Source of the DNA: Piromyces finnis finn | Lineage: Eukaryota; Fungi; Neocallimastigomycota | Direction: 5' to 3' | DNA: 64,000 nt | Assembly (NCBI GenBank): GCA_002104945.1 | Contig: MCFH01000026.1 | Coordinates: 558,001 to 622,000 of the forward strand | Part shown: one piece after another, positions 7,595-63,864 of the stretch | Layout: every line of letters starts with the position of its first letter | How positions within the stretch are numbered: position 1 is the stretch's first letter | Notes under the pieces: generated by a model | Database searches by the model: none | What the model was told of the DNA's origin: nothing | The model's input: only the letters and a program-made list of their open reading frames with translations | Position numbers and translations under genes: made by a program

Positions 7595-7632
<38 letters not shown>

Positions 7633-7773
7633 TCATATTTTTAATTATATAAAATTTGTAAGTAAAAATTGAATAAAACATTATAAATAAAAAGTTCTAT
7701 TTTTTTTTTCTTTATAAAAAATTACTATTAATATATATTATAAAAATTTGAACTAATATATCATCAATTATAA

Positions 7774-8560
7774 ATGAGAATTAGTATCTTTAACGAAGGC
7801 TACGAACCAGATGTTAATGGCTTACTTGTATCTGTTAAATCGCTAGAAAAGGGATTAAGAGAACTAGGACATGAAGTTTTTATTTTCGTTCCCAGAAACG
7901 TAATATTCTAAAATTTTTTTGAACATCCATCCTTTGATTACACTCCTACTACAGATAATCATATAGCATTCATTCCGGGTAAACGAATTCTATTTAACGG
8001 AGATCGAGAATATATTATCTCTGTTTCAAGATAATATATCATTTGTTGAAAAGTACAATTTAGATGTTATTCAATCTGAATTTTTTGTGGTAGCTTTAAA
8101 AAATTGAAAAGTCGTGGTCGTGTTATCTTCCGGAATTAAATTGGAAAAGTTTAATATTGCTAAACAAGAATTTCAAAAAATTATTCCTGAGGATTCCTTA
8201 ATTTTTATTTATGTTGGAAGATTGGCAACAGAAAAGCGTGTTAATGAACTAATGGATGCCATATGTCAAATATTAAAGAAATATCATAATGTTCATTTTC
8301 TTGTTGGTCCCAATGAAGAAGCAATGAAAGAAATTGTCTCTAATTATAGTATCTAATGATGAATACTTAAAAAATACTTTTGAAAAATAATTTCAATGGT
8401 TTTGGGGTAGATTCTGATGAAAAGTTTATCGAAAAAGTTGAAATATTATTAAAAAACAATACTATTCCGAGCTACAGAAAAACCCGGTCAAAATATGCTA
8501 TTGACACATCTATAATAAGGCTATCGAACATCATAATATAAAAAACCAAGTCCAAAATAG
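7774..8560 (+). pseudogene. GT4-family glycosyltransferase (bacterial glycolipid-synthase-like), disrupted
   Basis: ATG 7774 gives MRISIFNEGYEPDVNGLLVSVKSLEKGLRELGHEVFIFVP, a typical bacterial GT4 N-terminus. Later segment IFIYVGRLATEKRVNELMDAI (ORF 8114-8356). Stops, frameshifts and an apparent internal deletion; no introns seen. Confidence 0.75.
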
Positions 8561-10633: not shown

Positions 10634-11817
10634 TATTTTTTTTATTTCTTTTTTTCTTTTTTTAGTTTTTTTTTTATTGTTATTTTTGATAACCAATATT
10701 TTCTAATTATTTTTTATTTTAATATTTAAAAAATAGTTTTTGGTCTTTATAAATACCTTTTTTTTTTTTTTAGAAAAAAATCAATTTAAATAGTATATTG
10801 TATTATAATATATTGTGTAATCTACACAGACATAAATGCATATAAAATAGATAATAGATCTCATGGATACATCCATAAATGTATATGCATATGTATTATA
10901 ATATTTAAAGTATTACTCATAATTAATTAAAAAAAATTTAATGTTAATAGTGTTAAAAAGACCTTTTTTTTTACAATTATTAATATATAAGAGAATGTTT
11001 TATAATATTTATTTATTTTTAGGATATTCTACGTTATTTTTATCAATATTATATAACTAAATTTCTAAATAATATAATAATACCTTTTTTTCGGTTTTTA
11101 CTTCTGATTATATTCATGGATGATCATTTGCCAATAAATACAGTTTATGAATCATCCTACATTAATCAGTGATGGGAAACATTAATAATTGGATGAATAT
11201 AGCGTAAAGTTTAATAAATAATAATTTTTAATAAAAAATTATACAAAAAAAAAAGAAATATAGAAGTTTCTATATTATGGATATTCATTTAATTTATACA
11301 TTTTAATGGAAAAAAATTTCTATATATTTACTTATGGGTTTTTACTTTTTTATTTGTATATAAAATGTCATGGAATTGTTGTTAATATATTATTATTATT
11401 TTAAATAAGTTTATTAAATAGAATATATATTAGAATATAAAACAATAAATAATATGGAAAAAAGTAGTAGTAATAATAATATATACTTTTTTTAATTTTC
11501 ATATTAAATATATAATTATAATTAGCCAATTATAAATTTATTAGAATGATTTAAATTAATATATTAATATATGAATATATAAATGTTTTAAAAAAAATAT
11601 TTATTAATAAGTAAATGAATAAATAACTATTTAAATAAATTTATTAAATGTATATGATATTAATTATTTAAATAAATTATATTAAATGTATATGATATTA
11701 AAGGTGAATTCAAAGCATTTTAATAAAAATAAAAATGGAAGAGAATTCACTGGATTAAAAAGAAAAAATGTTAAAAATATCAAAGATTTAACTGTAGAAA
11801 CTTCAAACTAAAACGTT

Positions 11818-13460
<1,643 letters not shown>

Positions 13461-33792: not shown

Positions 33793-34022
33793 TGTTAAAC
33801 ATTAATAATCTAACTTAAATCTAGAAATATGTAGAATAGAATAGAATTATGTATTACTAATATATTTAGTCATAGAATATTCTCATGATAAATAATACGC
33901 CACAATTCTTAGTATAAATAGAGAATAAATTTATGAACTATTTATGTACTTTGTAATTACCTTTTTATTAATAATATTAATAAATAAAGTTTATATTAAA
34001 AACAATATTATAAATTTTCTCA
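33793..34022 (+). repeat. 5' LTR of copia element
   Basis: Direct repeat of 54710-54939. Confidence 0.93.
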
Positions 34023-34036
34023 GATTAAGAGTCTCA
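34023..34036 (+). promoter_or_regulatory. PBS complementary to the tRNA-Lys(CUU) anticodon arm
   Basis: GATTAAGAGTCTCA is the reverse complement of TGAGACTCTTAATC; it directly abuts the LTR CA. The same 14-mer occurs at 61544. Confidence 0.7.
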
Positions 34037-41404: not shown

Positions 41405-42612
41405 CGTAAACTATTAAATAAAATAAAAAATGTTTTCTTACTACTGTTTAAGTAAGTAATCTTAATTTTTTTTTACACTAATACAATCTATTTAAATACA
41501 AAAGTTATTAAACGCGTTCTGCAAAGCAGTGTCGAACAATTTTTGTATCTATATATTGATTCCTTCGGCTATAGTAACTGTAGAATTCCTTTAACTAGGG
41601 CAGCAACAGAGTTTAACCTATAATTGTTTCAGTAATTCCTCTTCTGTAGTAGCAACCAAGTACTTGTAATGTTGAACACTGGAAGAATTGTAATGCTGAC
41701 ACAGAAAGAATAGATTAGGATATCTATTCTATTACAATAACACTAAATTTAAAATAAAATAAAAATTGTTTTATTAAAAAATATCTTTTATTATAATAGA
41801 AATTTATTAATAACAATTACATCGATCAAAATGATGAAAAATATCTTCTATTTATATTTTTCCTAAGTACATTTATATTATATTATAACTATTTATTTCT
41901 TATATATTATTATTTAAAATCTACACTAAAATCTTAATTATTAATAAATATTTAAACTATAACTATTTTTAGTAAAATACAATTGGCAATTCAAATTAAG
42001 TACTATTCAATTTGAATATATGCCCATGTATTATTTATATATTAATCATTTAATATTTAATATTATAAATTGAGAATAACAATTACTGATACTAATTATA
42101 TATTCTCATGATTAATTAATTAATAATTATAACTAATGATTTTTGATCCAAAGGCTTTTTTGGTTTGATTATGATTGAGGTTATTAATCAAAATTATTTG
42201 AAAAATTATTAATTAATTTTTATAATTGATTAGGTTTGTAATCAAGAATATTTATTATCTAACCTTATTTAATAATAATGGAGAAGTTTTAAATTGAATT
42301 ATTTATAGAAAGTTGGATGACTTGAATAATGACTTTAATTATATAAATTAATATTAATCATTTAAATTATTTATAAGTTCTCATAATTTTTGACTAGTTT
42401 CTAGTAATATGATAATACAATATATTATAACATATCGCCATATTTCACATATTTGAAAATAATAAAATTTATATTACTTTTATATTAAATAAAAATATAT
42501 AAAAAAAGAAGGTTATTGGATAAAAATAACAGAATTATAGTGAAAATGGTGTAATAATTCATTAATAAAATTATAGACTATTTGTTAAATACTATTTGAT
42601 ACCAATTTTAAT

Positions 42613-42936
42613 TTTTTTTTTTTTTTTTTAGACTACCATATATCCTTAAACAGTATGACAGACCAGGAGGGTCACAACCACCTAGCAATAGGAATGAGCC
42701 AACGTTTCTATAAGAACCACCATTGGAGCTAACTCTGATCGATGGGAGAAATGCACTCGGAAGTTAAAAAAAAAAAAAAAAAACCATATATCCTCATCTA
42801 ACCCCCCTGAGTTATATATGGTATGTGATTGTACATTATTGTACATTGCCATATCAGAACGACGTCGGCACAATCATCCCTCTGGGCAGGGCTAATATGG
42901 AATGGCTTATTGCTCTTAACGATCCTATCACACAAA
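42613..42936 (-). mobile_element. Short poly(A)-tailed retroposed fragment (outer) with 15-bp TSD
   Basis: TSD gataccaattttaat at 42598-42612 and 42937-42951; T17 at 42613-42629; GC-richer body of about 160 nt. Confidence 0.85.
42647..42782 (+). mobile_element. Short poly(A)-tailed retroposed fragment (inner) with 12-bp TSD
   Basis: TSD accatatatcct at 42635-42646 and 42783-42794; 119-nt body plus A17. Confidence 0.88.
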
Positions 42937-44688
42937 GATACCAATTTTAATAATTATGATCAACTTCACAATTTACTATAGTTTTTATTATTTTAATTAA
43001 TAGTTATCAACTATGTTACTTTATAATTTAAATATATTAATTAATTATATTAATTACATTTTAGTACATTTACATAAAGTATATTATATACTATTACTAC
43101 ATGTATTTTATATCATTGTAAGCCACATATATTTAGTTTATATTTTATTTCTAACATCATTTATATATATATTGTAAATAATAAAACATTTTAAATATTT
43201 ATTAAAATATATTTAAAAATGTGTTATTGCGTTATTATATATTATTAATTTACTTATATTAAAGTTTTAGATAAAAATTAATTATTCTTTTAAATAAATT
43301 TTTACAATTTTTTTATATTATTAAAATAAAAAATAATATATTATAATAAAGAATTACATATATAAGTCTTAATTTATATTTATAAATATAAATATAGGCA
43401 CTCAAAATTAATATTTTACTATTATCTTATTATAAAATAATCATTATAAAATATAATTTCATTTTATACATCCAACATATTTTTTAAAGATTTTAAAGCT
43501 TCAATTAATTAAATAAAAATAAAATTATTAAACTAGTAATTCTAAACATTGATTTAATTAATGTTAAGCATATCAACAGGTCAATCGTTTATATAAATAT
43601 TTTAGTGTTTAATTTTATTATATTTTTATATACTTTTTTTTTGTTAGTATGATACTATATATAATTATTCCCGCTCATGATAGTGTATCTTATGATTCAA
43701 AATGGATTATAGTTCCATGGGTTGAAATTCAAGCTTTAATTCAAAATCTGATATTCAATTGTTTTTTTTTATAATTGCTCTTTAATAGTTAAAGCTTAAA
43801 TTATAAAAAAAAAAACAATTGAATATCAGATTTTGAATTAAAGAACTTTAATGAATTATATCTTATACAAAATTACAAAATAGATATATATAATATAATG
43901 ATAAAAATTAAATATCATTTTCAATAATGACTATATAGGCTTTACTTTCAATCACAATTTTTATAAACATTTTTTTTTATTTGAGTTTAGTTTTTAACGA
44001 AATTATAAATATGAATTATGAATTTAATAAATTTTATTTATATATTTATTACAAATGAAAAATATCATAATAAAAGTTAATAAACACAAAACATTCAATA
44101 TATAATATATTTATTTATATAAATTTTTAATAATAATGACAAATTATTAATTATTAATAAAAATAAAAATTATTTAATTATTAAATTTATTTCATACTAA
44201 TATTTATTTTAGGTTTTTTATAGTATTTTTTATAAAACTTTATTTAGTTATTAACTCGAATAGAGAAGTGATAACTAACTTAACTTATTTTATAATTAAC
44301 TAATATTATAGTAAACCTTTTACAATTTTAATGCTTTATAGTTGATTATTTTGTTAGTCTAGTTCTAGTTTTATTAAAACGTTCTAAAAAATTTATTTTT
44401 TTTAAAATAATTATTGTTTAATAACAATTATTTGTAATATTTTATTTAATATTATATTATATTATATTATATTTAAAAGAAATAAATTTATTATTATAAA
44501 TAATTATTTTTTTTAACATTTTATTATATAAAATTATTTTTTCTAAATTTCAAAATTCATAATTAATAATATACAAATTCATATTTATGAAATAAATTTA
44601 ATTAATAGATAATTTTATTAAATTTATTTCACAAGATTAACAAAGAGAAAAAGTTGCATTATAAATATTACAGTTACATAATGTGATG

Positions 44689-49534: not shown

Positions 49535-50433
49535 TACTATTTTAATTATTGCCTTAAATTTGACTGTAGTATAATTAGTTTAACCTTGATTGTTAGGTAT
49601 GAGATTATATTGTGTTGGGTTAACTGGCTCAACGGATTTAAACGATTTTCTAGAAAGAGTTAAGTAGTTTTTTCTAAAAAATTTTAAGTACTATTCAATT
49701 TGAATATATGCCCATGTATTATTTATATGTTAATCATTTAATAATTATATACTATTTATCTATTTCTATAAAAAAACAATACTAAAACTAGGTATTTAAA
49801 TTTAGAATTCTAATTTACTTGTTAAACATTAAAAATAAATTAATAATTTATTTTGTTTTAAACTTTAATTATTAATAAATAAATTATGTCTCATTTTCTT
49901 TTTCTGAATATAATTTGTGTAACTTAAACAATAATACTTATGGCTTAAGTTACATTAAAGATATCAAGTTGAGGCGTTTGATATCTTTACAAGAATAGAT
50001 TAGGATATCTATTCTATTACAATAACACTAAATTTAAAATAAAAAATAAAAATTGTTTTATTAAAAAAATATCTTTTATTATAATAGAAATTTATTAATA
50101 ACAATTACATCGATAAAATGATGAAAAATATCTTCTATTTATATTTTTCCTAAATACATTTATATTATAACTATTTATTTCTTATATATTATTATTTAAA
50201 ATCTACACTAAAATCTTAATTATTAATAAATATTTAAACTATAACTATTTTTAGTAAAATACAATTGGCAATTCAAATTAAGTACTATTCAATTTGAATA
50301 TGTGCCCATGTATTATTGATATATTAATCATTTATTATTTATATATTATTTATCTATTTCTATGAAAACAATACTAAAACTAGGGATTTAAATTGAGACT
50401 ATTAATTTACTTGTTAAACATTAAAAATAAATA

Positions 50434-53400
50434 AACAATGATTTAAATAAAAATATAAATAAATATCATACAAGCTGGATATACGATACAGGTGCTTCGG
50501 AACATGTTACAAATAATAAAGAATTTTTGCCATAAGAAAATTTAAATGAATTGTGCTAGCAATACAGTATGCTACTTTGATGGATTTGGCACATATGAAG
50601 GATATATAAATAACTATCCAATAAAATTAGCTAACGTATACTATTCCAAACAATTAAACAAAAACTTAATTAGCGGCATTAAACTTAATAACTCTGGATT
50701 CAAAAGTACTATAAGTCAAGAAAATAATAAACCCTGTATCATAATTAAATCTCAAGATAACAAGAACATTTATAAAACTTTCTCAAACAATGATAATAGC
50801 TTTCTTATTCATACTAAAACAAAGAATACAATAATAAGCGTATATTCAATATCAATAATTCAAAATTTAATGAAACACTATGGCATAATCGACTTGCTTA
50901 TTACTATAATAAAGATCTTAAAAAATATTTAATTGAACACAATATTTCCCAAAATTTTGTAATGTATGCAAAGCCAGCAAATTAAAAAGAAAGCCTTATA
51001 ATAAAATTACTCCTAAAGCTTCCAAAATCAATGAAATTATCCATTCAGATATTATTGGTCCACTTACTGAATCTGTTAATAAAAAGAAATATATTCTTAC
51101 TTTCATTGATGATTTTTCAAGACACTCTTGGATATATCTACTTTCTTCTAAAGCTGAAGCTCCTAAAATAATTATTGAATTTTTAACTCTTATTAATAAT
51201 CAGTCAAATAATCACAAAGTCAAATATTTTAAAAGTGATAATGGTAAAGAATACACTAACAAAAAGGTTATTAAATTCTGCAAAAAATATGGAATTATTA
51301 AATTATTTTCTCCTCCTTACAACCCGGAAAACAACGGAATTGCAGAAAGGTTCAACCAAACAATCATTTCTTCAACCAAAACTTTATATTGGAGCAAACT
51401 TAGTCTTAATTTTTGGAATTTTACAGTACAATACTCTAATTATATTTATAATTTAGTTCCTCATCAAAGCATTTCAAATCGTATTCTATATGAAATTTAT
51501 AATAGTAAAAAAGCTAATATTAACCATATCAAAGTCTTTGGATGCATTTGCGAATACAAAATTTTTAATCAACAAAAAACAAGTTATCACCAAACACTGC
51601 TAAAGGCATATTTTTAGGATTTAATACAAATGCGAATTCATATATAATAATGGACTATAATAAACAAACTATTCATCTGGTTAGAGAAGCCTACTTCCAC
51701 GAAGATACTCCTACTAACTACTCTGCTGACTCCGAATCAACAATTAAAGATCCTTACGATTTTAATTCTTACGTCCCAATGGTTAAGGACAATTCTACTA
51801 AGTTCGACCCTCCAGAGTTCAATTCCGCCAACAGTACCAATTCAGAAATTTTTAATTATATCCCAATCACAAATAATTCACTTAACCCTTCAGATAATTT
51901 AAATGAATTTTCAGGTACTACAACAAATTTTTCTGGTGAAACATCAAAAATTTTCTCCAATTCTAATAATGAAAATTTTAATTTAAATAATCAAAATTTC
52001 AATAATAAAATTTCAAATTCTGAAAATAATTGTGATCTTGAAATTTCAAAAAGCATTTCAAGAAATTTCTCGTCAAATAATGATTTTACCACACCAAATG
52101 AAATTATAATGATACAGACACATCTACTGATATCAACATTAATTATAATAGTCAAATTTCACCAACTCCTACAAATAATGATCTCGAAATTCATGATGAA
52201 TTTCTTAATACAAATAATTTTTCTTCAAGTAATAATAATTTTAATAATTCGACTCCTATTATAGAAAATAATAACATTAATAATTTTCCAAATAATCCAA
52301 CTAATTTTTATGACCAATTTTCCATATTTTATAACGATACAAATCATAAAATCCCTAAAAGACCTACCAATCCACTTATTAATCCAAAACTCAAAAGACT
52401 CAATTCTTATTCTTATCCTAAAATTAATTCTATTTCTTCAATACATACATCAATTCCTATAACCTATCAAAATGCATTATCAAATAATAATAGTGACAAA
52501 TGGATTAAAGCTATTAATGATGAACTAAACAATCTTTACAGAAATAAAACTATGACATTCGTTAAAAATCTTCCCAAAGGTAAAAATGTAGTAACCACCA
52601 AATGGATTTTCACTATTAAAACAGATGAAAATAATAACATTACTAAATATAAAGCATGTATTGTAGCTAGAGGTTACACACAAAAATATGGCATTGATTT
52701 TGAATTTACATACTCTCCAACTTTAAACTTTGATATTATTAAACTTCTTGCTATTTCCGCAAAATTCAAATGGAAAGTTTATCAATTGGACATCAAATCT
52801 GCCTACCTCCATGCAAATTTAGATACTACTATTCCCGAAGGTGATAAAAACTATGGAAAAGGATTTTGGAAACTGAATAAGGCTCTATACGGACTCAAAC
52901 GAAGCGGAAGACAATGGTATGAATACATTTCTACTTTTCTTATTAATCATGGATTTTCTCAATGCACTTCAGACTATTGCATTTTCTTTAAAATTTTTGA
53001 TAACCAAATTTCTTGTATTATTGGACTTTATGTTGATGATATGATTATTTGTGAAACAAACCTTGAACTTATAAATATAATCTCACAAATTAAATCTAAA
53101 TTTAAAATTTCTAACTGTCAACCTATTCATTATTTATTAAGTATTAAAATTGAAAACAATAATTTTTCTTATTCTATTTCACAAAAGCACGTTATTGAAA
53201 ATATTTTAGACGAATATAATCTTAATAACTGCAGATCTCGAAAAACGCCATGTACTGGTGACAATGATTCTGAAAACACTAAACCATTTGATACTACCAT
53301 TTACAAAAGTTTAATTGGTTCTCTTATTTACATTGCTAGATGAACAAGACCAGATATTTCTTTTGCTGTTCACAAAGCTGCTCGAAAATCTGAACAACCT

Positions 53401-53476
53401 ACTATTTCCGACTACAACAAAGTTATAAATATTATCAAGTATCTTAAAACCACTATAGACTACAAAATTACTTATG
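50434..53476 (+). pseudogene. pol: Copia PR-integrase-RT, degenerate
   Basis: WIYDTGASEHVTNNK, NKNLISGIKL, WHNRL, IIHSDIIGP, FIDDFSRHSW, SDNGKEY, ENNGIAERFN, YKACIVARGYTQKYGIDF, QLDIKSAYLH, KALYGLKRSGRQW and LYVDDMII. Several frameshifts and stops (e.g. TGA 53341). Confidence 0.92.
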
Positions 53477-54088
53477 TGTAAAGATATCAAACGCCTCAAC
53501 TTGATATCTTTAATGTAACTTAAGCCATAAGTATTATTGTTTAAGTTACACAAATTATATTACAGAAAAAGAAAATGAGACATAATTCATTTATTAATAA
53601 TTAAAGTTTAAAACAAAATAAATTATTAATTTATTTTTAATGTTTAACAAGTAAATTAAAATTCTCAATTTAAATCCCTAGTTTTAGTATTGCTTTTCAT
53701 AGAAATAGATAAATAATATATAAATAATAAATGATTAATATATCAATAATACATGGGCACATATTCAAATTGAATAGTACTTAATTTGAATTGCCAATTA
53801 TATTTTACTAAAAATAGTTATAGTTTAAATATTTATTAATAATTAAGATTTTAGTGTAGATTTTAAATAATAATATATAAGAAATAAATAGTTATAATAT
53901 AATATAAATGTATTTAGGAAAAATATAAATAGAAGATATTTTTCATCATTTTATCGATGTAATTGTTATTAATAAATTTCTATTATAATAAAAGATATTT
54001 TTAATAAAACAATTTTTATTTTTATTTTAAATTTAGTGTTATTGTAATAGAAGATATCCTAATCTATTCTTTCTGTGTCGCCATTACA
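53477..54088 (+). mobile_element. Solo LTR, family D (copy 2)
   Basis: TGTAAAG...CATTACA, 612 bp, TSD TTATG. Removal rejoins KITY-DGNGKIIAFTDAD in frame. Confidence 0.95.
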
Positions 54089-54566
54089 TTATGATGGTAA
54101 TGGAAAAATCATTGCATTCACTGATGCTGATTTTGGGGGAGATAAGATGGATGGAAAATCAACATCAGGATATATAATTCTTATGGAAAATAATCCAATA
54201 TGTTGGTGCTCAAATAAACAACAACCTATTGCTACTTCTACTGCTGAAGCCGAATATATCAGCACTACAGAATGCACAAAGAAAATTTCATACTTTAGAA
54301 ATATCCTAAAAGAATTATTCAAATTCAACGAACCAATAACTATTTATACTGATAACTTAGCAAGTAAAAGAGCAATTGAAAATGGTGAATTAAATTCCAA
54401 ACTTAAACACATAAATATAAAATTCCATTTCAATAGAGACAATATTAAAAATAACAAAATTAAACTAGAATATATTGACACAAATAATATGCTAGCAGAC
54501 TTTTTAACAAAAAATATTAATGGATCAAAAATGCAAAAGTTCACTGACATTATATTTAAAAAATAG
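54089..54566 (+). pseudogene. Copia RNase H
   Basis: AFTDADFGGD...KSTSGYI...WCSNKQQPIATSTAEAEY...TDN...KHINIKFHF...MLADFLTK. Confidence 0.92.
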
Positions 54567-54709: not shown

Positions 54710-54939
54710 TGTTAAACATTAATAATTTAACTTAAATCTAGAAATATGTAGAATAGAATAGAATTATGTATTACTAATATATTTAGTCATAGAATATTCT
54801 CATGATAAATAATACGCCACAATTCTTAGTATAAATAGAGAATAAATTTATGAACTATTTATGCACTTTGTAATTACCTTTTTATTAATAATATTAATAA
54901 ATAAAGTTTATATTAAAAACAATATTATAAATTTTCTCA
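54710..54939 (+). repeat. 3' LTR of copia element
   Basis: Preceded by the PPT; 228/230 identical to the 5' LTR; followed by ATTTT. Confidence 0.93.
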
Positions 54940-59510: not shown

Positions 59511-60322
59511 TTTTGTAAATATAACAAATATTAATTGATGCGTTGACCGATATATTTTTGAATAACATAATATTTTTAATAAATAATAATAGGATTTAGA
59601 TGAAACAATAAATTTAAAATAAAATACGTTTTATAATTAACAAATAAATCTCTTAAGCTCAAAAATAAACTCTTTAATTATGTTTTTAGATTATCTCTCT
59701 CTTTATTATATTTTTATTATTTATTTATTGTCCTTTTATTCTCTATTTATTTTCTGATTTTTATGAAGAAGAATTTTATCTTCCTTTTATACATTTTCAT
59801 TTATTACATGCATTATTATTTTTAACTATTAAATATTATTATTACTATTGACATTATTTATTAAAATTAAAAGAATAAATTAAAATTATGTCTTAGTATT
59901 ATAAAATATTATAGAATATTACTTATTTGATTTTCTTATTACTTCAAAATGTTTAAATTTAGAATAATTATTATAAATTATCATTAGCTATCATTAAATG
60001 TATAATACTTTGAATAAAATAATTAAAATTTAAAATTAAAACAATATTAAAATAAAATTAGCAAAATTAAAATATTAAAAGTATCAATTATTATAGACAC
60101 ACATTTTATACAGAAACATAAAAGAGTTCTGTATTTTATCTTAATATTCTAAATCCTCTTTGTTATTAAACTCTTTGAAATCTATTCAATTCCTAGAAAT
60201 CTATTACTTTCTTCAGGACTCTCTTCGGGACTCTCTTGGACTCTCTTTTGGACTTTGAACTCTCTGAAACTTCTCTAATTTCCGATTTCTTCTCTTGGAT
60301 ATTTCCTAAAAAGAAAGTAATT

Positions 60323-61054
60323 ATGGAACATAAATTCTTAAATACGAATAACAGTAATTTAGATAATGCAACTTTGAAAGATGGTTTTGAAGGAGACCGT
60401 CAGTATTTCAAAGGATTCATTGCAAAGATGGAACTTATATTTATGCTCTATCCAGACCGTTATGCTAGTGATACAGATAAAGTCGTATATTTGATATCTA
60501 GAATGTACGGCGATGCAATGAATTGGATCGCTTCTCTGATAAAAAATAATGATACATATTTATGACTACGAAGCCTTTGTTGGAAAGTTAAAAGCAATGT
60601 ATGGTTTTTCTGCTTCGGCTTTCGTAGCTAATAGGAAACTCAAAACAATAAAACAAGTACGTCTAGGTAATATTTAAAATTATATCCTAGAATTTAATAA
60701 GTTTGCAGACGAATCTACTTGGAATGAGGATGCAAAGATGGATGCTTTTCTGGAAGGCCTTCAAGGTCCAATAGCTAGTAGAATTCTGGAAATGTTCCCT
60801 GGACCGAAAACACTATCTTCAATGAAGACGATTGCTACTAGAATTGATTCAAGAATATCCGCTCACCGACAATTGTTTGGTAATGGAAAAAACCCTTCTA
60901 GTAAAAAACCTTTGTTTATATTCTGGATCTGCTCAACATAAGCTAGAAGATTGCCCATTAGCTAATAAGAAGAATTTGAACCTTCCAATGAATTAAATTC
61001 AGAAGAAAAGATAATGGAAATGCTACCCTCTAAACTTAATTCTTTTAAAGATGT
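60323..61054 (+). pseudogene. Degenerate Ty3 gag (element G) and start of pol
   Basis: FEGDRQYFKGFIAKMELIF...VVYLISRMYGDAMNW...DAKMDAFLEGL, with a degraded zinc knuckle near 60910-60960. Confidence 0.8.
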
Positions 61055-61083
61055 TGTAAAGATATAATATATATCTTTAGATT

Positions 61084-61557
61084 TGTTAGAATATGTGTAA
61101 CGTGATAAGTTTATAATATACTATGTAATATGTGTCAAACACATTGAAATTTATTTGTACTACATTAAATACATAAGCCATAATTGTAAATCATATAAAT
61201 ACATGTAATTTCACATAATGTAAACATAAGAGTCTTTAGAACAAATATCCTCATGTAATTCTTAATAATAAAATACATTAATAAAGTTGACATATTCATA
61301 AAACCCAATTAACCAAAATGTTAATATTTTTTTTTTTTTTTTTTTTTTTTTTTGATTTATTTGATACACACAATGTATTATACCTATCTCCTGGGCATTC
61401 ATTATAATATTGTCTATAATTATTAGGACAAAAATATGAGTATTTACAATTTCCAGATATTGAGAGTGAATTACCATTTCAATAATAAAATACATTAATA
61501 AAGTTGACATATTCATAAAACCCAATTAACCAAAATGTTAATAGATTAAGAGTCTCA
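61084..61557 (+). mobile_element. Putative copia-type 5' LTR (61084-61543) with tRNA-Lys half PBS, carrying a captured gene fragment
   Basis: Starts TGTTAG and ends TTAATA (CA probably mutated), directly followed by GATTAAGAGTCTCA as in the 33793 copia. Confidence 0.6.
61327..61480 (-). other. Poly(A)-tailed inverted copy of 127 nt of the neighbouring gene, between 63-bp direct repeats
   Basis: The reverse complement of 61354-61480 equals 62651-62777 with 1 mismatch. T27 at 61327-61353; 61264-61326 equals 61481-61543. Confidence 0.95.
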
Positions 61558-62415
61558 ATTGCCCTCAGTTCTCAACTAGCTCTCATATGCTCTCATGGTA
61601 CTACTAATATAAAACTTTAAAAGGACTTAATAAAATGGAAACTCCCAGCCGGACAAAATAGAAGAAAGAAAATACTAACTTATAATAAAAGCTACCTCTA
61701 GTCAACTTTAAAGAAAAACTAATATCAAAAATTAGAAGACTCTCAATACCTTAAATTAAAACTATCATTCCAATACTTAGCCAAAAACATCAATTAGAAG
61801 AATATGACTGATATAATTACCACCATACCAAAATTCAGAAAATGAAAAATTAAAATTTACAAAAATTTTGAAATCTCAAATTGAAATTTGAATTCTAAAA
61901 TTGAAATGTCAATATAAAATTGAAAATTATGAAGTGACAAATGAACAATAAAAATGAAAGAAAATCACTACTTGTTAAAATAAAGTTTCCTTACACTAAA
62001 ATAATATAGATAATTTTATATTCCGAAAATAAATTATTCTAAAATTGAATTTTGAATTTTATACTTTTAATTTAAAATTTAAAAATAAACCAAAGGAAAT
62101 TAAATTCAAATAACCTTAGAACAATTTTAGTTCAATTTATTTAGAATGTTAACAATACTTATTTAAAACATAAAACATGAAACTAAGAAATTATTAGTTC
62201 TGAAACTATTTTAAAATTATCAATGTTAAATATTAATATAAAGTTAATAATTTAAAATCCTAAAATATATACCATAAATATATAGAAGAAAACAAATATT
62301 AATCTTAAACTACTTTATTTCGTCAAATCCGTATAAATTGTTAACAAAGCAACAATTGTTTTATTATTTACCCATCTTAATTAAAATTTATTATTTATTA
62401 TAATTTCATTAAATA

Positions 62416-63864
62416 ATGAAACTAATAAACAACATATACAATTTAATTCAAATATTTCAAATATTTTTAATTCTACCGACAACATTTGCTTTAAATGAAC
62501 TATGTAATTTTAATGGAAACTACGGTGTTTGTGTAGACATAAATGATTGCAAATTGGTAGATAAACAAGAAGGAATAGCAGTTCCTAAACCAAATCTTTG
62601 CAATGGTGATAAAAACATTCAGTGTTGTATTAAAGTTGTTTCTACTCTCAGAAATGGTAATTCACTCTCAATATCTGGAAATTGTAAATACTCATATTTT
62701 TGTCCTAATAATTATAGACAATATTATAATGAATGCCCAGGAGATAGGTATAATACATTGTGTGTATCAAATGAATCAATAGAAGAAAAATCATATTTTT
62801 TTGCTGTAGGATCAAAAGAAATAGAATTTATTAAAGATATTAAAGAAGGAAATAAAAAATACTTTTTAGATGAAATCCCAAAGTATAAAGCATATTATGA
62901 AAAGTTTAGATTTACTGAAGACGAAATAATTTCATATGCCAACACTGCATTGGATTATTTAAAAACAAGTTATCTTTTCACAAATACAATAAATATTATG
63001 AACCTTAAACATATTGGTATTTATTTAGGATCTAAAGAGAAAGGAAGACTTTTTGAATTCGATAATAATGGATGGCATGTTAAAGATTATACTATGGAAA
63101 AACTTGATGAAGACCATAATGATCCAAACAAATGGAATTGGACTCACTTCAAGGAATTCAGGGGATATACAAGGGTTTCTCCAGAAAGCCTTGAAGACTC
63201 ATTAAATGATTATAAAGAAGTCAATCGTTACTTTAATAATAAATCATATAATCTTTTTTGTAACAATTGCCATGATTTTGTAAAATGGTGTTTAGAGATT
63301 ATTACTATGGGTAAACGTCTTGTAGAACCAGAATCCATTAATATTATAAAAGACAATTATACATTTAATACAAATGAAATTGACAATAAAAAAGCAGCCG
63401 AAAATATAAATACTATTATTAGTGATATACATAAAAAATTTCGTGCAAAAGGAAGTGGTGTAATAGATATTTTAAAGGTAGAATTAATTTACTATTTCCT
63501 TGTAAACATAGGATTTAAAAATAACGACATCATAAATATTAAATATAATGATCATGAAATATGCGCTGGATTGGATTATATAAATCTTCTTAGAGAAAAG
63601 AATTACAATGACGTTTGTAAAAGCTATGATTATAGTGGACTTATAAATTCTAAAGCCACTATTAATGGTAAATTTATCACATCAAGTGAAAACTTTTCTA
63701 ATTTTATTTTCGACAACGATTTATGTTTAGAATTAAATTCTAGCGATATAGTTGATAAATCCGATGATATCAATGGAACTGAAAACTTTAATGATATTAC
63801 TTTCACAAACATTTTTATTATATTTACATCAGTCATATTCTTGGAATTATTCAATTTATACTAG
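62416..63864 (+). CDS. Secreted, probably GPI/TM-anchored protein: two Cys-rich repeats plus a permuted papain-like (PPPDE/LRAT/NlpC-P60) domain
   Basis: Signal-like N-terminus; repeats C..NG..GVC...C...C.GD..IQCC and G.C...FC...CPG....LC. His motif KHIGIYLG precedes Cys motif YNLFCNNCHDFVKW. Hydrophobic C-terminal tail; intronless. Confidence 0.7.
   Translation: MKLINNIYNLIQIFQIFLILPTTFALNELCNFNGNYGVCVDINDCKLVDKQEGIAVPKPNLCNGDKNIQCCIKVVSTLRNGNSLSISGNCKYSYFCPNNYRQYYNECPGDRYNTLCVSNESIEEKSYFFAVGSKEIEFIKDIKEGNKKYFLDEIPKYKAYYEKFRFTEDEIISYANTALDYLKTSYLFTNTINIMNLKHIGIYLGSKEKGRLFEFDNNGWHVKDYTMEKLDEDHNDPNKWNWTHFKEFRGYTRVSPESLEDSLNDYKEVNRYFNNKSYNLFCNNCHDFVKWCLEIITMGKRLVEPESINIIKDNYTFNTNEIDNKKAAENINTIISDIHKKFRAKGSGVIDILKVELIYYFLVNIGFKNNDIINIKYNDHEICAGLDYINLLREKNYNDVCKSYDYSGLINSKATINGKFITSSENFSNFIFDNDLCLELNSSDIVDKSDDINGTENFNDITFTNIFIIFTSVIFLELFNLY

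Follow-up and report, generated by a model that had tools for sequence, protein, structure and literature searches.

An inverted, poly(A)-tailed self-copy in the 5' LTR of a young Piromyces finnis element: a probable trace of reverse-transcriptase template jumps

In a window of 64,000 nucleotides from the anaerobic gut fungus Piromyces finnis (contig MCFH01000026.1, positions 558,001 to 622,000; coordinates below are those of the window), part of an open reading frame (ORF) recurs upstream, inverted and tailed, inside a long terminal repeat (LTR). How did it come to be there, and does it do anything? The sequence-only reading of this DNA took the fragment to be a copy of a neighbouring gene. 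That source is wrong: the ORF is the internal ORF of the very LTR element in which the fragment lies, and the insert is hence a self-copy.

The element and its cargo

The host of the insert is a complete, very young, non-autonomous LTR element of 4.3 kb, with the ORF between its LTRs. Its parts are as follows.

61079-61083, no strand: target-site duplication AGATT, 5 bp; the second copy lies past the 3' LTR, beyond the window (L025:7617-7621)
61084-61543, plus strand: 5' LTR, 243 bp in its normal form, 460 bp here
61544-61557, plus strand: primer-binding site (PBS), 14 nt, complementary to nt 27-40 of tRNA-Lys(CUU)
62416-63864, plus strand: cargo ORF, 482 aa, with a signal peptide, a Cys-rich N-module, a PPPDE/LRAT-like papain-fold domain and a hydrophobic C-terminal tail
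L025:7374-7616 (window-equivalent 65374-65616): 3' LTR, identical to the 5' LTR at 243/243 positions, without the insert

The 5' LTR measures 460 bp because a 154-nt insert and a 63-bp duplication have been added to the usual 243 bp, and the insert is confined to this LTR. Among family relatives LTR identity is 97.9-100%, and the target duplications vary by copy: AGATT for the copy described here (C152), ATAAG for a sister copy (C208), and TAAAC, TGGAT, TAAAC and AATAC. A polypurine tract, AAGGGGGAA, lies just upstream of the 3' LTR. The PBS pairs with nt 27-40 of a genomic tRNA-Lys(CUU), and this complementarity implies that the primer would be a half-tRNA, terminating in the 3' side of the anticodon stem. 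Because six further complete family elements share the LTR end TTAATA followed by GATTAAGAG, the LTR/PBS border is fixed to the base. The internal region has only one ORF of more than 90 aa and no gag or pol coding capacity.

All Pfam matches of that ORF (PPPDE, RTE1 and LRAT) are weak and fall under the thresholds. The neighbours of its product in predicted structure appear PPPDE/LRAT-like, and no relative was found in the PDB. The LTR family as a whole consists of young elements with intact, secreted, Cys-rich ORFs, in which the enzyme domain is a GH24 lysozyme, PPPDE-like or unknown; these ORFs are apparently maintained, with common N- and C-terminal modules but a swapped enzyme domain. The cargo suggests retrotransposon-borne shuffling and spread of secreted enzymes, a context that may matter more than the insert itself.

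The insert and its source

The modified part of the LTR, and the part of the ORF to which it corresponds, are made up as follows.

61264-61326, plus strand: repeat copy 1, 63 bp, matching the final 63 bp of the LTR; putatively R+U5
61327-61353, minus strand: T27, on the minus strand the A25-27 tail of the copied RNA
61354-61480, minus strand: inverted copy of ORF nt 62651-62777, 126/127 identical, including the C152-specific G matching 62678
61481-61543, plus strand: repeat copy 2, 63 bp, terminating at the exact LTR end (...TTAATA)
62651-62777, plus strand: source segment of the inverted copy, inside the ORF
62778-62790, plus strand: A/G-rich tract abutting the 3' side of the source segment; possibly an internal landing site

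The geometry reported earlier is confirmed: perfect 63-bp repeats (61264-61326 and 61481-61543) flank an inverted, tailed copy with 126/127 identity, the insert is antisense to LTR transcription, and it sits at the LTR end adjoining a real PBS, with repeat copy 2 finishing exactly at the LTR/PBS border. The two repeats are identical, and their similarity extends 0 nt beyond them on either side; the 154 nt between them are T27 plus the reverse complement of 62651-62777. Nothing was lost from the element: 63 bp are duplicated and the remainder is collinear with the C208 copy. The copied piece encodes ORF residues 79-121, the second cysteine cluster (C90, C96, C107 and C116), and is separated from its source by 1170 nt. 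T27 is the only homopolymer run of at least 12 in the element. Because source bases 62778-62779 are AA, the copied part may be 127-129 nt long, with a tail of 25-27 nt. The insert/repeat junction has 0 nt of microhomology, the tail junctions being uninformative.

The sole mismatch, a source G (62773) against A in the copy, converts AATGAA to AATAAA. It had been argued that this hexamer, together with a tail that starts mid-CDS, betrays a prematurely polyadenylated transcript or allele. The mismatch does create the hexamer and the tail does start mid-CDS, but the gap between the two is just 2-4 nt, less than a normal poly(A) signal requires, and premature polyadenylation is not needed: a poly(T) DNA end could land on 62778-62790, where it could pair with 12 of the 13 positions, G:T pairs included. 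The G-to-A change could equally well be a G:T misincorporation right after a template switch.

The whole assembly contains three copies of the ORF segment and one inverted copy, the insert. The sister copy C208 occupies another site, on a different contig (target duplication ATAAG), and is 99.93% identical (3 differences in 4136 nt), with an empty LTR. The LTR of the third copy, C80, is likewise empty; C80 is a near-duplicate of C208 that carries frameshifts. A G at 62678 is common to the insert and the C152 copy only, and since the insert thus carries a variant private to that copy, the donor on this evidence is the C152 copy's own lineage. An RNA-mediated origin is supported, because the pure A-tract is present in no genomic copy. 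For the same reason a DNA-templated inverted duplication by fork switching is ruled out, no template containing the tract. A perfect distant donor with a genomic A-tract, which the earlier reading had proposed to look for, was not found among the three ORF copies in the assembly: all are without an A-run and without the A variant.

Ten PBS loci yielded no other duplicated LTR end beside the same PBS type, and within the family an LTR end followed by poly(T) occurs at the C152 locus alone. A search for retrocopies of whole element transcripts, which would reveal the poly(A) site, found none, and metagenome contigs, searched for other strains, contain neither the insert junction nor the empty site. 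As judged from the assembled sequence, the insert is a single-copy, unique and very recent event.

Routes by which the insert could have arisen

We consider it probable that the insert was built into the 5' LTR by template jumps of reverse transcriptase (RT) during the round of retrotransposition that created the C152 copy. The strands point to the stage: since the plus strand of the 5' LTR is plus-strand strong-stop DNA, the insert would have been made in that DNA, and plus-strand DNA copying a sense poly(A) RNA is indicated because T27 followed by antisense sequence has no other source. A minus-strand origin is ruled out by the same logic, since the template would have to be antisense RNA and the 3' LTR would bear the mark.

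Specifically, RT would arrive at the U5 end on minus-strand DNA, the half-tRNA primer having been removed or left unread, and would make an end-to-end jump to an element RNA within the particle, landing on its poly(A) 3' terminus and copying about 27 A and 127 nt there. A second jump would then take it to a surplus minus-strand strong-stop DNA, at the 3' terminus of that molecule; this DNA, derived from the second packaged RNA, would be 63 nt long (R+U5), with its primer still attached. R-U5 would be copied again, followed by the 14 primer nt that form the PBS, and strand transfer and integration would proceed normally. Lauermann and Boeke (1997) and Mules et al. (1998) are reported to deal with strong-stop transfer and untidy ends in Ty1.

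Under this model element transcription is predicted to start at 61264, where R would begin, and the 63 nt would correspond to R+U5. An R starting at 61264 fits the local sequence because T at 61263 and A at 61264 make a Py/A start, the LTR's only TATA-like motif sits 70 nt upstream, and the 63-nt repeat contains two AATAAA against 0.35 expected. End-to-end jumps fit because there is no microhomology at the insert/repeat junction. For a retrocopy placed at random, the chance of hitting its own 4.3-kb element is about 8 in 100,000, and chimeric retrocopies are known to arise when the RT of LTR elements switches templates inside particles (PMC5131818). Several points count against the model. It requires that one strong-stop DNA undergo two jumps between non-homologous templates; in published retrocopies of the LTR-mediated kind (PMC5131818), junction microsimilarity and internal replacement are usual, neither of which is seen here; and no second example of such an event occurred in the family loci searched. 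Moreover, a poly(A) tail, a flanking duplication and 5' truncation are also the classic signature of LINE retroposition, and the genome has active LINEs.

That signature could have been left by LINE-type retroposition in situ, into an LTR element already integrated, a route we regard as unlikely. A LINE endonuclease/RT would have nicked the plus strand where LTR and PBS meet, primed synthesis on an ORF transcript that was polyadenylated or A-rich internally, and copied 127 nt; a second nick 63 nt away would have given a long target duplication. The machinery is at hand, with at least 34 genomic loci encoding a LINE-type endonuclease domain in open frames of up to 1478 aa, and other inserts that combine a poly(A) tail and 5' truncation with a target duplication are common (three in the window, more elsewhere). 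The insert in the LTR too has a tail, a duplication and 5' truncation. Those other inserts entered AT-rich sites in which T follows the nick, as at the C152 locus. On the strand of the insert the LTR end has the sequence TATTAA, an AT-rich motif that is common, with 30 sites in the element. However, the duplications of the other poly(A) inserts are 10-16 bp (11, 14, 11, 12, 16 and 14 in this small sample) against 63 bp here, and at least three of those inserts are LINE 3' ends sharing one terminus rather than foreign RNAs. Nor does LINE retroposition give a reason for the 5'-LTR position and the antisense orientation; the insert lies within its own source element, and the duplication ends at the LTR/PBS border to the base, a coincidence of 1 in about 4300 positions, or about 1 in 30 when only TATTAA-type sites count. 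Another duplication of about 60 bp in the window starts with the same TATTAA hexamer, which would suit a nicking activity of unknown kind. A 7.6-kb block with a 60-bp duplication, considered as a possible LINE, has no ORF2 match, no Pfam match and hardly any ORFs.

Capture of a cDNA fragment at a staggered chromosomal break, or an error of long-read assembly, seems very improbable. Retroelement cDNA capture at breaks is known in yeast and gives repair a precedent, but end joining gives no perfect 63-bp duplication ending at a functional border. The assembly is of uneven quality, as the near-duplication of C208 by C80, with frameshifts, indicates; an assembly error, however, would not yield a tail, a precise duplication and a copy-specific variant together, and here an intact ORF lies between LTRs of 100% identity. 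On the template-jump reading, the insert looks like a one-off copying accident by RT rather than a designed regulatory switch, and it is probably neutral or harmful to the C152 copy.

Silencing potential, significance and known systems

Whichever of the origins holds, the insert could in addition trigger silencing of the element family and the cargo gene via RNAi, through a hairpin or antisense RNA, though we give this little credence. In its strongest form, equally doubtful, the insert would be a heritable self-targeting module whose 5' LTR hairpin, or short polyadenylated antisense RNA, silences the sister copy and the cargo in trans via Argonaute. The double-stranded stem proposed earlier does form in silico, at 127-140 bp, provided that both arms lie in one RNA, and reaches about 140 bp if the transcript starts ahead of the insert. 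Piwi-domain (Argonaute) genes occur at three or more loci in the genome, and the 99.9%-identical sister copy would be a target in trans. On the other hand, the two AATAAA of the second R copy lie about 220-240 nt past the putative start and may terminate transcripts that have yet to reach the sense arm, and a unique, very recent, single event gives no sign of selection or spread. A "ready-made" RNAi switch is not borne out for so young, unique and single-copy an insert. Copying of the fragment with the LTR in the next cycle, also suggested, could happen, though the internal R copy might lead to the fragment being bypassed.

If template jumping by RT is the right reading, the insert is a rare natural fossil of a replication error at the end of plus-strand strong-stop DNA, and a physical record, in a copia-like element, of R+U5 length and of strong-stop jumping. 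It would supply a testable transcription start and R+U5 length for an unstudied half-tRNA-primed family in an anaerobic gut fungus. It would also mean that antisense self-copies of cargo can be gained in one step, a possible route to self-silencing hairpin loci. If the self-targeting module were real, it would be a natural, RNA-born "killer" locus for the LTR family.

The nearest known process is LTR-mediated retroposition, in which virus-like particles give rise to template-switch chimeras (Tan et al. 2016, PMC5131818); yeast Ty1 retrosequences are among the cases cited there (Derr 1991; Schacherer 2004; Maxwell and Curcio 2007). Here too a reverse-transcribed piece of RNA is embedded in an element that retains both LTRs and its own 5-bp duplication, and RT leaving and rejoining the element template is the explanation offered. 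In contrast to those chimeras, the donor is the element's own RNA, in antisense and with its poly(A) tail kept, and the insert was added, without junction microsimilarity, rather than replacing internal sequence. It stands where U5 meets the PBS, with the terminal 63 nt of the LTR repeated on either side. Together these differences point to plus-strand strong-stop DNA and end-to-end jumps, not to minus-strand copy choice. With processed retrocopies made by LINEs through target-primed reverse transcription, the insert shares the poly(A) tail, 5' truncation, direct repeats and AT-rich target, but it differs in its 63-bp duplication, against 10-16 bp, and in lying at a replication landmark of its source element.

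Drosophila copia is primed by the 5' part of initiator tRNA-Met. Like copia, the present element has a PBS that pairs with an internal tRNA stretch ending at the anticodon arm rather than with the 3' CCA end, but the tRNA is Lys(CUU) and the stretch nt 27-40. We infer that the next base, G26, beside which the pairing stops and which is usually dimethylated in eukaryotes, would halt plus-strand copying. In Mu killer of maize, an inverted transposon duplication gives rise to hairpin RNA that silences the family. The C152 locus likewise has an inverted partial element copy where read-through would give long double-stranded RNA, whereas its origin is RNA-mediated and within the element itself, and its hairpin is predicted from the sequence. 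Finally, maize Bs1 is a non-autonomous LTR element with a captured gene (as cited in PMC5131818). Like Bs1 and LARD/TRIM elements, the present one has LTRs, a PBS, a polypurine tract and 5-bp duplications but no gag or pol, with a host-type ORF between the LTRs and copies able to retrotranspose again; here, however, there is a whole family, with intact ORFs, common N- and C-terminal modules and a swapped enzyme domain.

The insert and the element that carries it

The window is about 76% A+T and contains retroelements throughout. The insert lies in the 5' LTR of a 4.3-kb element, laid out as follows.

61084-61543, plus strand: 5' LTR of the element
61264-61326 and 61481-61543: perfect 63-bp direct repeats
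61327-61353: run of 27 T
61354-61480: reverse complement of 62651-62777, 126/127 identical
62416-63864, plus strand: ORF of 482 aa
62651-62777, plus strand: source segment, coding for residues 79-121 of the ORF
L025:7374-7616 (a locus extending the window's end): copy of the first 243 bp of the 5' LTR, 243/243 identical

The 63-bp repeats cannot be extended by a single base on either side, and the insert/repeat junction shows no microhomology. The sole mismatch between insert and source gives AATAAA in the insert where the source has AATGAA. Sequence comparison reproduced every part of the sequence-only reading's description (perfect repeats, A27, inverted copy, and a mismatch that creates AATAAA), which is correct and far exceeds chance expectation. 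Because AA follows 62777 in the source, the copied stretch is 127-129 nt long and the tail 25-27 nt. Searching all 232 contigs of the assembly (56.46 Mb) with queries from the LTR region and the ORF gave no second instance of the insert, and the metagenome contigs searched had none either.

The sequence that begins at 61084 recurs 4.3 kb downstream, just beyond the window, and the element so delimited is flanked by a 5-bp duplication, AGATT. A purine tract, AAGGGGGAA, precedes the 3' LTR, a primer-binding site (PBS) abuts the 5' LTR, and the ORF, the only sizeable one between the LTRs, is on the same strand. The source had been taken for a separate neighboring gene; with these features around it, the ORF is instead, judging by its sequence context, cargo of the same non-autonomous LTR retrotransposon that holds the insert. 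Directly upstream of the 5' LTR is a decayed gag-like frame with stops (60236-60990), so the element inserted into, or next to, the remains of an older retroelement.

A copy of the element on contig C208, with different flanks and its own duplication (ATAAG), differs at 3 of 4,136 internal positions and at one LTR position. Its LTR is normal, with the 63 bp present once, and thus supplies, within the same assembly, the empty state that the sequence-only reading had suggested looking for. Contig C80 (L027, 21.6 kb) represents the same site again: it is a near-duplicate of the C208 element, with a shared 5' flank, 98.9% identity, and frameshifts and stops in the ORF, and is a haplotig or else a duplicate contig of low quality. 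One of the three C208 differences, at position 62678, falls within the copied segment, where the element under study has G, C208 has A and C80 has a deletion. The insert has G, which identifies the donor, by this diagnostic base, as the element's own lineage. A perfect donor among paralogs, a check also suggested earlier, does not exist in the assembly: the AATAAA variant is in none of the genomic copies of the source segment.

The element family and its primer

The family consists of young non-autonomous LTR elements of 4.3-4.9 kb, with 5-bp duplications, a common polypurine tract and a half-tRNA-Lys PBS. Each member has one intact ORF.

Family members
L025:3084-7616
L026:3114-7429
L042:2540-7446
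L043:2510-7405
L044 (minus strand)
L045:2690-7550
L046:2657-7479

The cargo ORFs are alike at both ends: a signal peptide and a conserved Cys-rich N-module of about 120 aa come first, and the C-terminal tail is hydrophobic. The domain between them is swapped and is either GH24 phage lysozyme (PF00959, E = 1e-25), PPPDE/LRAT-like or unassigned. Further N-module matches occur on C184 (four within 12 kb), C146, C180 and C188.

Besides the element under study there are six complete members of 4.8-4.9 kb, with 97.9-100% identity between their paired LTRs and a separate 5-bp duplication for each. In all six the LTR terminates in TTAATA and is followed by GATTAAGAGTCTC, a 14-mer complementary to nt 27-40 of a genomic tRNA-Lys(CUU) gene (L063:1473-1546). 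Priming would be by a tRNA fragment whose end lies in the anticodon arm, as in copia-type elements. The complementarity ends exactly beside G26, a base usually dimethylated in eukaryotic tRNAs, and we infer that this modification would halt plus-strand copying and fix the PBS length at 14 nt. The second 63-bp repeat ends exactly at the LTR/PBS border. The earlier placement of the insert at the LTR end next to the PBS therefore holds, with the PBS real and the border fixed through the six family elements.

Elsewhere in the window, a 230-bp LTR pair (33793-34035 and 54710-54939, 99% identical) is separated by 20.9 kb. After the left LTR comes the same half-tRNA-Lys(CUU) PBS; ORFs for copia-type RT/RNase H are at 52552-54566. 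The unit looks like an autonomous copia-like element enlarged by nested insertions, of a kind that may supply enzymes to the cargo family. A tandem array at 11743-13400 repeats about every 260-290 bp; every unit includes a long (TAA)n run, and the GC content is 9%.

Origin of the insert

Three constraints bear on the origin: the change is confined to the 5' LTR, the copied sequence is antisense and has its T-run on the sense strand of the element, and the U5/PBS border is where the duplication stops. When an LTR element replicates, what will become the plus strand of the 5' LTR is made as plus-strand strong-stop DNA, which is templated by the 5' end of minus-strand DNA and next by the primer, yielding the PBS (PMC6894440). 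An origin in minus-strand strong-stop DNA is rejected, since the 3' LTR would be marked, as is a minus strand bearing sense sequence and A27, which would need an antisense template. T27 joined to antisense sequence is obtainable only from plus-strand DNA copying a sense, A-ended RNA.

From these strand constraints we therefore propose, as the probable though far from certain origin, plus-strand strong-stop DNA built on three templates in succession. Synthesis would proceed on minus-strand DNA to the end of U5, continue on an A-ended element RNA within the particle, copying about 27 A and 127 nt, and finish on a spare minus-strand strong-stop DNA with its primer still attached, which would repeat R-U5 and then give the PBS. 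Each junction would be a template end, which fits the missing microhomology and would explain the exact match of the repeat to the final 63 nt of the LTR. The model predicts that R+U5 is 63 nt long and that transcription starts at 61264. A T/A step at 61263/61264, the sole TATA-like motif of the LTR 70 nt upstream of 61264, and two AATAAA motifs within the 63 nt (0.35 expected) point weakly the same way.

Other duplications and poly(A)-tailed inserts in the window bear on whether a LINE-type event could instead have inserted the copy in place.

7598-8064: poly(A)-type insert, 427 nt, T29 tail, 11-bp duplication TCTAAATTGTA
41996-42055 and 49684-49743: 60-bp duplication, 59/60 identical, inside another LTR, flanking a 7,628-bp composite block
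42598-42951: two poly(A)-tailed inserts, one inside the other and on opposite strands; outer insert 307 nt, T18, 14-bp duplication; inner insert 119 nt, A18, 11-bp duplication, LINE 3' end in common with inserts in L042 and L043

We consider such an event unlikely, even though LINEs in this genome look active (34 endonuclease-domain matches, frames up to 1478 aa) and three further inserts in the window have poly(A) tails and target duplications. Those duplications measure 10-16 bp in all available DNA, against the 63-bp stagger required, and at least three of the other inserts are LINE 3' ends with a common terminus, whereas here a foreign RNA template would be needed. The event must also have hit the 4.3-kb element of its donor, for which a random site has odds of about 8 in 100,000, and placed one end exactly on the LTR/PBS border. 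Our confidence in the three-template origin is lowered by the TATTAA with which the 63-bp duplication starts on the insert's strand, a common motif with 30 occurrences in the element, and by the separate 60-bp duplication, which also starts with TATTAA on the minus strand.

The block between the 60-bp copies has at its left end a 308-bp repeat present at least 40 times; its right end is unique, and it carries a 611-aa coiled-coil ORF on the minus strand. It contains no RT, and attempts to identify it as a single element gave no match. The 3' end of the 7598-8064 insert is AT-rich and does not resemble the LINE terminus; the insert may therefore have been retrocopied from a different RNA.

For the tail, premature polyadenylation of the element RNA, as the sequence-only reading had it, is one possibility; its AATAAA, however, is just 2-4 nt away from the tail and occurs in none of the genomic copies. 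Immediately 3' of the source segment comes an A/G-rich stretch of 13 nt (62778-62790). A poly(T) end could base-pair with 12 of these 13, G:T pairs counted, so a T-run made on any poly(A) tail might have settled at this place. In that case the G-to-A change, which lies 5 nt further on, would reflect a G:T misincorporation shortly after the switch.

Consequences and comparison with known retroposition

If transcription begins at or before 61264, the RNA includes both arms, and its predicted fold has a stem of about 140 bp, in line with the dsRNA stem suggested earlier. Such transcripts may, however, end early, because about 220 nt from their start they would now meet the second R copy and its two AATAAA motifs; what would be left is a short RNA with the antisense segment. 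A further round of retrotransposition could pass the insert on; alternatively, an early jump from the internal R copy, driven by homology, could bypass it. Piwi-domain genes are present in the genome; the modeled stem and these genes alone are no evidence of a silencing or regulatory function.

The insert is one event, informative on mechanism. The nearest known process is LTR-mediated retroposition, which proceeds by template switching in virus-like particles (PMC5131818). Here, in contrast, the element served as its own donor and received an antisense copy that keeps its tail, sequence is duplicated rather than replaced, the site is the U5/PBS border, and the insert/repeat junction lacks microsimilarity.
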